From the NCBI GenBank assembly GCA_038496445.1, contig JALMLS010000536.1, positions 63,865-127,864 on the forward strand: 64,000 nt of DNA, read 5' to 3'. Each line of letters opens with the position of its first letter. Within the stretch, counting starts at the first letter, position 1. Origin of the DNA: Trichosphaerium sp. ATCC 40318 (taxonomy: Eukaryota; Protista; Tubulinea). The notes under the pieces were generated by a model, which was given only the letters and a program-made list of their open reading frames with translations, searched no databases and had not been told where the DNA came from. Of the stretch, positions 29,470 through 34,038 are shown piece by piece. The translations under genes and the position numbers were made by a program.

Positions 29470-32298
29470 CTAAGCAGATAATTCCATACTTATGCGAACC
29501 AAATGATCATATGTCACAGCAATATGACCTAAAAGCGGCTTTAGCTAATAGCGAAAAAAAAAAAAAAAAAAAAAAAAGAAGCCTCACCGTCTTTGTGAGG
29601 ATCACTCCAATCGAATAGTTCCTTCACGTGTACCAAATGACAGCATAGTTTTAATAAATCATTCTTAGATCCTGCTGCGCCAATAGCAAAGTGAGCCAGC
29701 TGGGAAGAAACCGTAAGTCCAAATGCAGCAAGTTTAGAAAAAAAGAAGCTAATCCTTACACTGTTTTCTATTGTTTTGAGACTAACGTTAATGTTCGCAT
29801 GAGCCAATGTAGTTTTGATTTCTTCAGCACTGAATGCACGTGGTTCAGAACCAACATAAAGTTTTGATTGAAGCGTATCAACAAGATGATGGAAGGCAGC
29901 ATATTCTACGAGATAAAACATATGAGATTAAAAGAAAAATGACGCCGATAGATATTTTGGCGTAAAGTCACTGTTTATGCACCTTCGAAGCTAATTGTTC
30001 CATTTCTGTCTTCATCAAATACAGATATAATTTTATTGGCCATCTCAACACCAAGAGGTTGATCCCCATCGAAAAATACTGCCTTGGAAAGTCTAAAAAA
30101 AAATAAATGTTCTAGATTCAAATACTCTGTTTTGAGTTTGCTGCTTACTCTGTAACTGATATTTCACCATTTTTGTTATCATCCATTGCATCAAAACTTC
30201 CTTTTAACCCAGACAACTCCAAACTTTTGACTTGTTGAAGCATAGTCTTATGCCAATCACGACCTAATTTTTCTCATTATTTTCTTATTTAAACTTTTGT
30301 CTTTTGATTTTGCTCCACAATTCAGGAACCACAATTACCATCTATTTGGTTATATTGAACCTTTTTCCTCACAGCTTGACTTCTGGCTTTTTCAGGTGCA
30401 CCTGGTTTTTCAACAGGTTTACCTTGAGACGCTAAAAGGGTGTCAAAATAAAATGTATAAATTTGTTTGGTATCAGCCGTGTTACCTGCTCTTCTTAGTT
30501 TACTTTTTAATCCCAATGACTTGAATCTATTAATGGCAACAGCGATCTTAACACCAGCTTTAAACTTCCTTCTTGCATTATATTTCCTAAATTGCTCTCG
30601 AGATACTTCAGGAATCTCTGTATCTTTTATAGTAGCACTAGCCTACAAAGGAAAAAAACAAATAAGCAAAACTTATCTACACCAATATTCAATTCGTACT
30701 ATCCATGGATGAGCCAAAGCTTGATCAACAGTGAAACGTTCATTAGGATTCTTTCTTACCATCTTCCATACTAAAGCCGATAAGAATCAATCCAACAACT
30801 AAAGAAAAAAAAATGTACCCAAATCTTTTGCATCATTCGATATGCCATACCTTCCATTACATAAGGAACATTCATGTTATAATGTTTATCTCTATAGATA
30901 GTAATTTCACGTACCACGCATCACCAAGCCAATTCCACGTGCCAACCTCGATATTTCTCATCATTTGTTCTTGGTCAGGTATTTGGAATGGATGTATACC
31001 GCTCAGTAAAATGTACACGATCAAACCTAATGCTCTTTGTTAACATTGCAGGTTTCTCTATAACACTCACCAATTGCCCATACATCTACACCGATACCAT
31101 ATCCTTGAACTGGAGACATTTGCTGCCAACGGCGTGCAACTAAAAACCTGTTATCCAATTGAGCTTTAATTATCGGTTTTACCAATTTCTGGAGCCATCT
31201 AGGTGATTGTAAGACATAAATATAAGGATATAAATTTACGTACATATGGAATTGTACCAAGCATAGTCCTGAATGCAAATGGGTTAGATCCACCACGAGC
31301 GGCAAACCCGAAATCTGAGTTTGACATTAGATATTTAAAAACCAAACATCACAAAGCTCTGTCTTGAACTTAAACCTTGCAGTACCTGCAATTTTTACAA
31401 TAGCGTCATCACCACCTGAAGACAATAACAGATATGGGAAATGTTAAGCCAAATAACAGCAATAAAATCAACGTTTGTTAGGTGTAAAAATAAAATAGAA
31501 TAAAGATACTCTCCGGTTTTATATCACGATGCGCAATACCTACCACAGTCTCTTTAACAAACAAAGTAACAGTATGAAAACAATAACAGTCGTACCCTGA
31601 TCGTGCATGTGTTTTAATCCAAGAAGGACTTGTTTAGTTACAGAGCTAGCATAAGCTTCACCAAATCTCTTCAGCTTGGCAATACGATCAAACAACTCTC
31701 CACCTGTACACACGTGAGAAAAAAAAAACAAATAAATAGTAAAGGGTCTGTGAATAAATTATCGGGTCATAGCTTACCCGTTACGTATTCTAAGGTGACG
31801 TAATACTGGAAGTCGCCTTGTGGAGCGAAAACTTCACCCAAGTTTACAATCTAGTTCAAAGGCGTTAGATAGCGTTTATACAACGTGCAAATGTGAATTT
31901 GATCCGTTTTCGTACGTTTTGGTGTTGTAGATCAGCCATAACCTTCAACTCGCTTAGCATCTGGTCTGGTGGCGTTTTACGTTTATCCAGGATCTTCACA
32001 GCGCACGCCTGAACATTAAAAGGGTTTGTAAACTAAAAGTGTTAAGAACAACTCTCATACTTTGCCTGTTTGCTTATGAATAGCCTTACTACGCGAAATT
32101 TAGTGTTTGCTATAAACAACACACGTACTGAACAACAGAAAACGCTCCAGATCCTAATTTCTCCTTAAAATCGTATATAGATTGGATTGGGGCATCATTT
32201 TGTCTTGGGAACCGCCATGACATTGCTGGTATTTGTGGTTGTGCCTGCTGAGTAGATGACCATTGTTGAGCAGGAGGAGCGTTACTAGGGAACTCCAT
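29470..32298 (-). CDS. CaMK-group Ser/Thr kinase fused to a C-terminal penta-EF-hand domain
   Basis: LGSGAFS, AVK, GGELFDRI, HRDIKPEN, DFG, CaM-binding-like NARRKFKAG; EF loops DDNKNGEISVTE, DEDRNGTISFEE, DPHKDGHIAVTY. Confidence 0.9.
31434..31509 (-). other. U12-type intron with non-canonical GT-AT termini
   Basis: Donor GTATCTTT, branch GGCTTAAC, end ...TTCCCAT. Only this junction yields KPE-N-LLL. Confidence 0.8.
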
Positions 32299-32554: not shown

Positions 32555-34038
32555 TTACTTGGTTCTCCTCTTTTTCTTTTTTTGTCCTTTGACGTTATCT
32601 TTCCAGTATGCAGCCTCTTCCTCATCTACAAAATTCATTAATGCGTCATTTAAAGACAAAAAAGATGTACAAATAAATAGACAAAACGGTAATTAAAAAG
32701 CAATTGTCGTGATCTGTAGTACCTTTGACAAGTTCAAGAGTGATATCATGACCTTCAATCTGTGGGGTTTGTCCTTCTAGAGCAGAAATGCAAATAGCAG
32801 CACGTAGGTCTTTCTTGAAACGGACAAACGTAAACTCTTCGCTTTTGTTAGTATCAACGAAAGCAACTTGACCATGATCTATTCATTCGAAACGTTAGCA
32901 CCTCCAACAAATAAAATAGTCAAAAAAAATAAAAAGTACGTACCAACAAAGAACGCTTTGATCATATCACGAGTTACCTCTGCAGGTAATTTTGGAAATT
33001 TAAGGATAGTTCCAGGAGGGTATTCAGTAAGTGCTTCTTGTCGTTTTCTCTTCTTGATACGGGTCTCCTCTTTCTTCCATTCAAGGTATTCCTTTCTAAA
33101 AAAAGCCACATTAGATACATGAAAAGAAACAACAAAATAGTCACAACGCACTTCATTCTGACCAATAGAGGATGTTTATCCAAGTAATTAAACGCGCCTA
33201 GTGCTACAACTTTCTCAGCTGCTTCTTTGCTCTCATACTCTATATAAGCTGATCCCTTCAAAAGATCCTTTTTCCTAAACACACGGCGAATACGAACCTA
33301 GGAAGAGAAAAGTTACAAAAAAAGAAAAAAATGCAGTTGTGTTTTTTATCAAATGTAAAATTAAAAACGCTCGATAGAGGTTTACTCTGTTACGTACGGA
33401 CAATACTGTGCCGAATTGAGAAAAGTATTTTTGTAGGGCTTCGAGATTAGTCTCTTCTGCATTCTTTGGGAGCCCTTTCTACGGTAGGTGAGTATTGATC
33501 ATGTTTCACGTTTTAGCAGCAGACGTACGACATAAATACTTCTTGGTGTTACTACATCATCTTGTGGAAGTGGGTGCCTACGCTTCATCTTGGTCTTATC
33601 TTCAGAAACCTAAGCCTGTTTTGGTATTCGCTCAGAGAAGGTTTGGTTTTACCTCAACGACTTCTGAGTCTACCATAATTGATGCGATTTGCTCCACGTC
33701 TACGGTTACTTTCTATTTTGACGTTAGAGAGTGAAGTTTATGCGCTGTATACCTTAATTCTGTTAAAAGTGGTCAATAGCGACACTGGGATCCCTTTGTG
33801 TAGTCAAGGAAAAAGAAAAATAGAGTAAAAAGCAACTTCAAGTTAAAAAGATACAACCACCATTGTCATGCGCTGCTTTACGCAAGAAAGTATCCTTGGT
33901 GTAGTTACTGTCGCTGAAATAGAAATCTATCTGCTTTTTCAAAGCAGCCTTTTGTTCCTCAGTGATTGGGTTTGTGTCTTTTGGTTCCTCCTCTTTAGCC
34001 TCAACCTTTGTGTCTACCTTCGTGTCCGTTTCAGCCAT
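32555..34038 (-). CDS. La/SSB-family RNA-binding protein (La motif + RRMs)
   Basis: LKKQIDFYFSDSNYTKDTFL...GWIPVSLLTTFNRIK, KGSAYIEY, second RRM with FVRF. Confidence 0.9.
33794..33854 (-). other. U12-type GT-AG intron in La gene
   Basis: Donor GTATCTTT, branch TTCCTTGAC about 10 nt upstream of AG, interrupts the Trp codon of GWIP. Confidence 0.9.

Follow-up and report, generated by a model that had tools for sequence, protein, structure and literature searches.

Calcium signals are converted into protein phosphorylation by only a few known routes, namely, calmodulin acting with CaMK, CBL acting with CIPK, and the single-chain fusions CDPK, CCaMK, and SCAMK. In CDPK, the tethered calmodulin-like domain captures a helix and thereby frees the active site. 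Penta-EF-hand (PEF) proteins are a separate family of sensors. ALG-2-type PEF proteins usually sense calcium via EF1 and EF3 and bind proline-rich motifs rather than basic helices, and the PEF domains of calpain open clefts in response to calcium that bind the amphipathic helices of calpastatin. To our knowledge, EF5 pairs with the EF5 of a second molecule in all PEF proteins that have been studied, and we know of no well-known PEF domain fused to the C terminus of an enzyme other than that of the classical calpains.

Kinases tethered to an EF-hand sensor are not new. Plant CCaMK is an independent fusion of a kinase and a noncalmodulin, visinin-like EF-hand sensor, and kinetoplastid SCAMK is a kinase of the SnRK3 lineage fused to a CML/CBL-like EF-hand sensor (PMC5924475). 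As CCaMK and SCAMK are independent fusions, kinase/EF-hand-sensor fusions arose more than once. Little is known about calcium-decoding kinase fusions in Amoebozoa (PMC5924475). Here, we describe one intact, intron-rich gene in the 70-Mb genome of the marine amoeba Trichosphaerium that is predicted to encode a CaMK-type kinase with a penta-EF-hand tail. The explanation that we favor overall, with a probability of about 0.68, is a single intact gene for a CAMK kinase, a regulatory helix, a linker, and a PEF domain, the product of which would be gated by calcium through helix capture and would dimerize through EF5.

Gene structure

The window is the whole stretch of DNA that was analyzed, 64,000 nucleotides in length, and all positions refer to it. 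The open reading frame runs from a CAMK-group kinase through a regulatory helix and a linker of ~58 residues to a 180-residue C-terminal EF-hand domain. All junctions of the 19-exon model kept frame, and the GC content was 0.40 in exons versus 0.31 in introns. The coding region would shrink to 570 codons if a candidate in-frame intron of 54 nt in exon 14 were removed. The peptides quoted in the initial annotation were all recovered on the minus strand inside 29470-32298, where they sit on five consecutive short exons, E15 to E19 (30263-29470). These exons connect to the kinase exons via GT-AG introns of 40 to 77 nt, and the joined frame has no stop. The gene as a whole and the features upstream of its tail are as follows.

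29470..32298, minus strand: complete coding region with 19 exons, 588 codons, and a stop
30700..32298, minus strand: exons 1 to 13, N-terminal 41 residues and protein kinase domain (residues ~42-306), from translation and Pfam and PDB matches
31434..31509, minus strand: putative U12-type intron in the catalytic loop with GT-AT ends, from donor and branch-site-like signals and a paralogue match
30514..30618, minus strand: regulatory (autoinhibitory/calmodulin-binding-type) helix, residues ~316-350, exon 14, from phmmer against the PDB
30339..30513, minus strand: linker, residues ~351-408, basic and proline containing, carrying the candidate 54-nt intron
30485-30432, minus strand: candidate intron in exon 14/linker, in frame, 54 nt, GT-AG, GC content of 0.31 like the other introns, T-rich 3' end

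Kinase and sensor are predicted to lie on one transcript, with the junction between exons 14 and 15 read from gene structure only. The intron that separates linker exon 14 from exon 15, the first exon of the PEF part, is 75 nt long (30339/30263), and the published mean intron size in the Trichosphaerium genome is 75 nt. Skipping of the exon 14 donor would lead to a stop five codons on and hence to a kinase without a sensor. That nearby stop, a Met at tail residue 8, and the predicted nature of the junction would also suit two neighboring genes or alternative transcripts, in which the kinase ends five codons past exon 14 and the early Met of exon 15 initiates a small PEF-like protein. We consider such an arrangement improbable, however, as just 75 nt lie between the parts, the donor and acceptor signals are standard, and the joined frame is open. 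Moreover, homology to PEF-B, one of two stand-alone PEF proteins of the same genome, starts at tail residue 2, upstream of the Met. Finally, both stand-alone proteins, PEF-A and PEF-B, have long Pro/Gln/Tyr-rich N-terminal exons, whereas the PEF part of the kinase gene lacks any such N-terminal tail.

Kinase domain, regulatory helix, and linker

The kinase is predicted to be an active CAMK-group Ser/Thr kinase with intact catalytic motifs. In the 588-residue translation, in which the GT-AT intron is used, the catalytic core is complete (glycine loop, Lys, Glu, HRD, Asn, DFG, APE, and Arg). Pfam Pkinase matched the kinase exons in an exon-level search, and exon 5, again at the exon level only, had as its top PDB matches apicomplexan CDPK1, the C-terminal kinase of MSK, CaMK1/2/4, and DAPK. 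As expected of a member of the CAMK group, the nearest relatives found by these exon-level searches were CAMK kinases, and a CaMK-type regulatory segment follows the kinase. Three paralogous CaMK genes, 40 to 60% identical, are present in the genome, and they are without a PEF tail.

How the catalytic loop is spliced required an unusual intron. A plain GT-AG model was rejected, as use of the nearest AG acceptor would cost six residues, the Asn of the catalytic loop among them; the intron must therefore be 31509-31434, with GT-AT ends. Seven of eight positions at its 5' end fit the U12 donor consensus, and a branch-site-like motif lies ~10 nt before its 3' end. Removal of the intron yields the Asn of the catalytic loop together with the strand after it, and the residues gained by GT-AT splicing match the kinase paralogues on contigs C146, C157, and C99. 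We note that a U12 snRNA candidate was found in the genome, with a score of 39 bits that is under Rfam's cutoff.

The helix after the kinase, which had been noticed as resembling a calmodulin-binding segment, proved to be real. Its best phmmer match in the PDB was the calmodulin-binding peptide of CASK (E value of 0.0015), and next came CASK, CaMKII, and CaMKIV, where the matched segment occupies the equivalent place behind the kinase domain. A similar helix motif is also found in the tail-less CaMK paralogues. The linker had no Pfam match, and a likeness of 28 of its residues to the CaMKII hub domain was set aside as not significant (domain E value of 53).

EF-hands of the tail

The predicted features of the tail are as follows.

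29470..30263, minus strand: PEF domain, exons 15 to 19, residues 409-588, running up to the stop codon, from BLASTP and phmmer against PEF-B and PEF-A
30149..30183, minus strand: EF1 loop, residues 436-447, canonical 12-residue loop, last codon split by intron 15
29983..30016, minus strand: EF2 loop, residues 473-484, canonical, last codon split by intron 16
29820..29855, minus strand: EF3 relic, residues ~501-512, acidic ligands missing, short by two residues relative to PEF-A and PEF-B
29655..29687, minus strand: EF4 relic, residues ~537-547, without calcium ligands, short by one residue relative to PEF-A and PEF-B
29503..29603, minus strand: EF5, residues 565-578, the odd fifth hand, spanning intron 18 and aligning to EF5 of PEF-B

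Positions 1, 3, 5, 9, and 12 of the EF1 loop are occupied by acidic or polar ligands, and at the exon level, the loop was matched by Pfam EF-hand_5 and EF-hand_1, below cutoff. The exon-level match of EF2 to EF-hand_1 scored 20.5 bits, EF-hand_7 matched there as well, and the EF2 region is 55% identical (16 of 29 aligned residues) to the stretch of PEF-B exon 4 that contains its EF2 loop. The codon split by an intron at the end of each of these two loops is that of the position 12 Glu. EF3 and EF4 had been called degenerate, and they are. The EF3 relic is placed in the middle of exon 17, and mis-splicing cannot account for the degeneracy of either hand because both relic loops are exon-internal and clear of splice junctions. 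EF5 keeps its hydrophobic pattern in the alignment with PEF-A and PEF-B, and just ten residues remain between it and the C terminus, as in PEF proteins.

The tail as a penta-EF-hand domain

The identity of the tail at the domain level was read from local alignments of the joined tail with two comparators, PEF-A and PEF-B, which are the ALG-2/peflin-like proteins of the same genome and for which gene models were built from coordinates in this analysis. Both comparators were identified as PEF proteins by their matches to PEF chains of ALG-2/PDCD6, sorcin, and calpain in the PDB; the exons of PEF-B also matched grancalcin, and its EF5 exon matched EF5 of ALG-2 and of the small and large calpain subunits. 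By BLASTP and phmmer, the joined tail aligned to PEF-B (287 residues) with 95 bits over 182 columns, at 29.7% identity and with four short gaps, a similarity well beyond what chance would give. The alignment pairs tail residues 2-179 with PEF-B residues 108-287 and comes within one residue of both C termini. PEF-A scored 80 bits, and identity to both PEF proteins was about 30%. The other EF-hand proteins of the genome scored lower, with 35 bits for a calmodulin-like protein, 27 for calcineurin B, 25 (24.6) for an NCS-like protein, and 22 for calmodulin, and in BLASTP, they aligned with the first two EF-hands of the tail only. Moreover, when 18 EF-hand loci were compared by spliced alignment free of gene models, the two PEF loci ranked first, with Z scores of 11.3 and 8.1 versus at most 4.7 for the rest. 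Finally, exon 16 matched only itself and the PEF genes genome-wide, despite at least 76 EF-hand_7 matches in the 70-Mb genome.

Single exons gave a less uniform picture, and it is here that a diverged calmodulin-like tail of the CDPK type, with four EF-hands and a fifth that was over-read, finds its support. Taken alone, exon 16 had calcineurin B and calmodulin as its best PDB matches, and the sole EF-hand match of exon 15 in the PDB was the EF-hand lobe of a soybean CDPK, at an E value of 0.35, which is not significant. Exons 17 and 18 taken singly matched nothing in the PDB or Pfam and gave no BLASTP alignment to PEF-B exons; Pfam holds generic EF-hand models only, and the matches of exons 15 and 16 to these were below cutoff. 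An Atlas search with the stop-free stretch of exon 17, intron 17, and exon 18 gave a best score of 0.75, to a PPR cluster. In addition, the genome's calmodulin-like protein aligned loosely over most of the tail, with a raw score of 98. The joined exons tell against this reading, however, and it is in the EF3-EF5 half that homology emerges only upon joining. That half was matched by PEF proteins only, with 39.7 bits (E value of 8e-9) against PEF-B versus at most 18.5 bits against calmodulin-type and other EF-hand comparators, and the alignment stops one residue short of both C termini. Moreover, each PEF protein scored more than twice as high against the full tail as any calmodulin-type protein, and PEF-B is closer to the tail (raw score of 232) than it is to calmodulin (raw score of 131). 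We therefore regard a calmodulin-like tail as very improbable.

The general properties of the family agree. Five consecutive EF-hands, collinear with those of family members, fall within the ~165 to 180 residues that are characteristic of PEF domains, and an unpaired fifth hand lies at the extreme C terminus. The Gly/Pro/Tyr-rich N-terminal extension of PEF proteins is absent, and the kinase and basic linker occupy its place; this absence is not disqualifying because the PEF domains of calpain also lack one. The initial annotation had read the tail as PEF rather than as a calmodulin-like set of four EF-hands, and the collinearity with PEF-A and PEF-B through EF5 bears it out. We conclude that the comparisons support a penta-EF-hand domain homologous to the organism's ALG-2/peflin-like proteins. 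The tail does not appear to be a recent copy of PEF-A or PEF-B, however, because no tail intron coincides exactly with an intron of either gene; the closest pair, located in the EF2 loop, differs by one base.

Comparison with known systems

CDPKs of plants, ciliates, and apicomplexans resemble the amoeba protein in combining a CAMK-group kinase, a CaMK-derived helix, and a tethered EF-hand sensor in one chain. The CDPK sensor, however, is a calmodulin-like domain of four EF-hands directly after a short junction, and no such domain was found here. Instead, the amoeba sensor would be a PEF domain of five EF-hands, of which only EF1 and EF2 are intact, after a linker of ~58 residues. CCaMK and SCAMK differ in that their sensors belong to other families and include no PEF domain, and the SCAMK kinase is of a different lineage. 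The three-EF-hand visinin/NCS-like domain of CCaMK is likewise absent, the NCS-like protein having matched the first EF pair of the tail only.

ALG-2 (PDCD6) and peflin, of PEF group I, share with the tail a span of ~170 residues for the five EF-hands, an EF1 loop with the canonical 12 residues, and a C-terminal EF5. Unlike the amoeba protein, they stand alone, with a Gly/Pro/Tyr-rich N-terminal tail and with EF1 and EF3 as the main calcium sites; in the amoeba, kinase and linker replace the N-terminal tail, the EF2 loop is canonical, and that of EF3 is dead. The classical calpains also carry PEF at the C terminus of an enzyme, and that PEF dimerizes through EF5, but the enzyme in question is a cysteine protease, and the PEF domain belongs to group II and has an EF1 loop of 11 residues. 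Finally, CaMKII and CASK have the regulatory helices most similar to the one found here, and the C-terminal domain of CaMKII oligomerizes the kinase. Their C termini, however, consist of a hub in CaMKII and of a scaffold module in CASK rather than of an EF-hand sensor.

Discussion

How the PEF domain might control the kinase can be proposed from related systems. We infer that the protein would be gated by calcium and would dimerize. At rest, the regulatory helix would block the kinase. Binding of calcium to the EF1-EF2 pair would open a hydrophobic cleft, and the cleft would capture the helix of the same chain, or that of the partner chain in a dimer, such that the active site is freed. The unpaired EF5 would pair with the EF5 of a second molecule to make a dimeric kinase. 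Helix capture is proposed by analogy only because ALG-2-type proteins use EF1 and EF3 and proline-rich ligands and because EF3 is dead here. In its fullest form, the PEF domain might be both the calcium switch, in which EF1-EF2 captures the autoinhibitory helix, and an obligate dimerizer through EF5, activation might be coupled to trans-autophosphorylation within the dimer, and the protein might be a further independent one-chain calcium-decoding kinase. We offer this fullest form tentatively and hold it to be rather unlikely in all its parts.

The same single protein might be wired differently. Free calmodulin could act on the CaMKII/CASK-type helix to switch the kinase, and the PEF domain could be a calcium-dependent targeting and dimerizing module in place of the CaMKII hub, one that recruits the kinase to the partners of PEF proteins (for instance, ESCRT, annexin, or COPII-type proteins). 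Indeed, the segment to which the helix is homologous does bind calmodulin, the helix is common to tail-less paralogues that must use a separate sensor, and the genome has a canonical calmodulin gene. Moreover, the gap of ~58 residues between helix and PEF domain is far above the short junction of CDPK. A classical ALG-2-like targeting role is weakened, however, because EF3-EF5, the region with which ALG-2 binds its partners, is the most degenerate part of the tail. We see this wiring as possible but doubtful.

What would be novel in the kinase-PEF protein is the PEF sensor on a kinase, as sensor-kinase fusions as such are already known from CDPK, CCaMK, and SCAMK. A PEF-sensor kinase would add another independent solution to calcium decoding and would extend calcium-decoding fusions to Amoebozoa. 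The PEF family dimerizes by itself and has so far been known as a fusion only to a protease, calpain; the amoeba protein would thus offer a natural experiment on whether helix capture by a PEF domain can control an enzyme. If the domain is indeed both switch and dimerizer, the calpain design would have its counterpart in a kinase.

How widely the gene is distributed bears on its interest, which would be mainly evolutionary should the gene prove to be restricted to a single amoeba. We found no published description of a kinase paired with a PEF sensor. A search of the linker exon against 1.84 billion representative proteins returned no orthologue and no self-match, only three unrelated matches (Ig-like or coiled), and exon 17 had no match among metagenome contigs. 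Within the genome itself, one of the CaMK paralogues lies ~4.7 kb from PEF-A on contig C146. The two genes lie head to head, separated by two MORN-repeat genes, and given that arrangement, we attached no weight to a linked ancestry of the pair.

A predicted kinase with a penta-EF-hand tail

The minus strand of the window at 32298-29470 is predicted to encode a 588-residue protein in 19 exons, a model that was built from the sequence and holds a single open frame over all junctions with zero stops. The translation has the full set of catalytic motifs expected of an active Ser/Thr kinase, and Pkinase matches were returned by exon-level searches. The structures closest to exon 5 were apicomplexan CDPK1, followed by MSK, CaMK1/2/4, and DAPK, and thus the kinase belongs to the CAMK group. 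About ten residues past the kinase domain begins a regulatory helix (residues ~316-350, exon 14). The initial annotation described this segment as resembling a calmodulin-binding helix, and indeed, its best match was the CASK calmodulin-binding peptide (E 0.0015), with CASK, CaMKII, and CaMKIV matching next, each at the equivalent place. Paralogues of this kinase are encoded by at least three other CaMK genes of the genome (contigs C146, C157, and C99; 40 to 60% identity in the kinase domain), all with a similar helix, and none of the three showed similarity to the tail, the C-terminal 180 residues encoded by exons 15 to 19. The regulatory helix derives from ordinary CaMKs. In the assembly searched (70.3 Mb, 642 contigs), the linker (residues ~351-408) and exons 15 to 18 were each single copy, exon 19 being too short to search.

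What kind of calcium sensor the tail represents was approached through the EF-hand proteins of the same genome. The EF-hand_7 model has at least 76 matches there, and exon 16, which encodes the EF2 loop and the stretch linking EF1 to EF2, matched only itself and four loci. The four loci are two stand-alone genes for penta-EF-hand (PEF) proteins, modeled by coordinates:

L002 872-2366 (G000:C146, a contig of assembly G000): PEF-A
L003 718-2261 (G000:C58): PEF-B, with near-identical copies on C519 and C154

Both consist of a long Pro/Gln/Tyr-rich first exon and then five EF-hands. The EF3 exon of PEF-B matched Leishmania and human ALG-2/PDCD6 structures, sorcin, and grancalcin, and the top matches of its last exon included only EF5 of ALG-2 and of the calpain small and large subunits. 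Thus, PEF-A and PEF-B are genuine PEF proteins. For both exons that were searched, the three PEF-B contigs gave equal match scores (78% and 72% identical to PEF-A), a result suggesting haplotigs or recent duplicates. One of the closest tail-less CaMK paralogues (L038 5192-6699, G000:C146, ~121.7-123.2 kb; also L041) lies ~4.7 kb from PEF-A on that contig, in head-to-head orientation and separated from it by two MORN-repeat genes, a proximity that is probably coincidence.

The tail resembles these two proteins rather than calmodulin, in line with the PEF sensor initially proposed. PDB, family, and homology searches were run exon by exon, and the joined tail was compared locally with same-genome sequences only, a small set in which it scored 95 bits against PEF-B (29.7% identity; tail residues 2-179 with PEF-B 108-287 of 287) and 80 bits against PEF-A versus 35, 27, 25, and 22 bits against a calmodulin-like protein, calcineurin B, an NCS-like protein, and calmodulin, respectively. 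Nearly all of the non-PEF scores came from the first EF pair. The EF3-EF5 half scored 39.7 bits against PEF-B by BLASTP (E 8e-9), and 23 and 17 bits against PEF-B and PEF-A by phmmer, versus at most 18.5 (BLASTP) and 1.2 (phmmer) bits against the other EF-hand proteins compared. Moreover, spliced alignment of the tail to 18 EF-hand loci, which is independent of the gene models, placed the PEF loci on top, with Z scores of 11.3 and 8.1 versus at most 4.7. Not in favor of the PEF reading, single exons searched against the PDB gave matches that were not PEF specific, and exons 17 and 18 searched singly gave none. The five EF-hands are as follows:

Residues 436-447: EF1, canonical 12-residue loop
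Residues 473-484: EF2, canonical 12-residue loop
Residues ~501-512: EF3 relic, ligands gone, shortened
Residues ~537-547: EF4 relic, ligands gone, shortened
Residues 565-578: EF5, PEF-type loop ending ten residues short of the protein end

Group I (ALG-2/peflin) proteins are characterized by a canonical EF1 loop of 12 residues. The degeneracy of EF3 and EF4, noted at first by eye, is real: the relic loops sit inside exons, and their decay is therefore not a modeling artifact.

The kinase and the PEF tail very probably form a single gene, a prediction to which we give a probability of roughly 85 to 90%. A 75-nt intron with ordinary signals separates the linker exon from the first PEF exon. Homology to PEF-B begins at residue 2 of the latter, upstream of the sole candidate Met, and the tail is without the N-terminal exon found in both stand-alone PEF genes.

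Possible mechanism and distribution

How calcium would control such a kinase may be considered by analogy. In ordinary CaMKs, the helix occludes the active site until calmodulin removes it, and in CDPKs, a tethered sensor removes it in cis. In calpain, the EF1-EF2 pair of the PEF domain opens when calcium binds and clamps onto the amphipathic calpastatin helices. As EF1-EF2 is also the only pair with intact calcium sites in the tail, we prefer a reading in which calcium binding would cause that pair to capture the regulatory helix, in a dimer joined through EF5. The chief alternative is that free calmodulin remains the switch and the PEF domain is a targeting and dimerizing module, a reading favored by the length of the linker and by the genome having calmodulin. 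ALG-2 binds its partners via the EF3-EF5 surface, however, and in the tail that surface has decayed, which counts against this alternative.

A full-text literature search found no description of a kinase-PEF fusion. Calcium-decoding kinase fusions have been surveyed and include CDPK, CCaMK, and kinetoplastid SCAMK, the sensors of which are all calmodulin, visinin, or CBL related (PMC5924475). The predicted protein would be a variation on such fusions in which the sensor is a PEF domain. Single-exon queries found no orthologue (linker exon against 1.84 billion representative proteins; exon 17 against metagenome contigs). Pfam-based domain surveys would tag such a tail simply "EF-hand," and thus relatives may already be in the databases, unrecognized.

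Splicing of the predicted gene

The window has a GC content of ~37% and short GT-AG introns, and the published Trichosphaerium genome has a GC content of 37.7% and a mean intron length of 75 nt (PMC10521059). Within the gene, GC is 0.40 in exons versus 0.31 in introns. Two segments are listed separately:

31509-31434, minus: U12-type intron with GT-AT ends, splitting the kinase catalytic loop
30485-30432, minus: candidate intron of 54 nt within exon 14, in frame, GT-AG, GC 0.31, T-rich 3' end

The donor of the GT-AT intron is U12-like, and a branch-site-like motif precedes its 3' end by ~10 nt. With this intron removed, the catalytic loop and the next strand are complete and agree with those of three paralogues encoded elsewhere in the genome. 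The nearest AG acceptor was rejected, as it would cost six residues including the catalytic Asn. A full-length U12 snRNA candidate (G000:C49:145161-145303) scored 39 bits, under the Rfam cutoff of 53. Splicing of the candidate exon 14 intron would shorten the protein to 570 residues; if it is instead translated, the 18 residues it encodes, together with a few that follow, bear a weak, nonsignificant likeness to a CaMKII hub-domain motif (domain E 53). Intron 17 (60 nt, window 29700-29759, minus) is open in frame, and its retention would add 20 residues to the helix entering EF4 with the frame kept. Intron 18 (59 nt, inside EF5) consists mostly of a homopolymer, ~29 T as read in the coding direction (window ~29549-29577, minus). 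Finally, an RRM-like segment is encoded by the neighbor upstream on the minus strand (window ~32870-33290), only a few hundred bases from the start codon.
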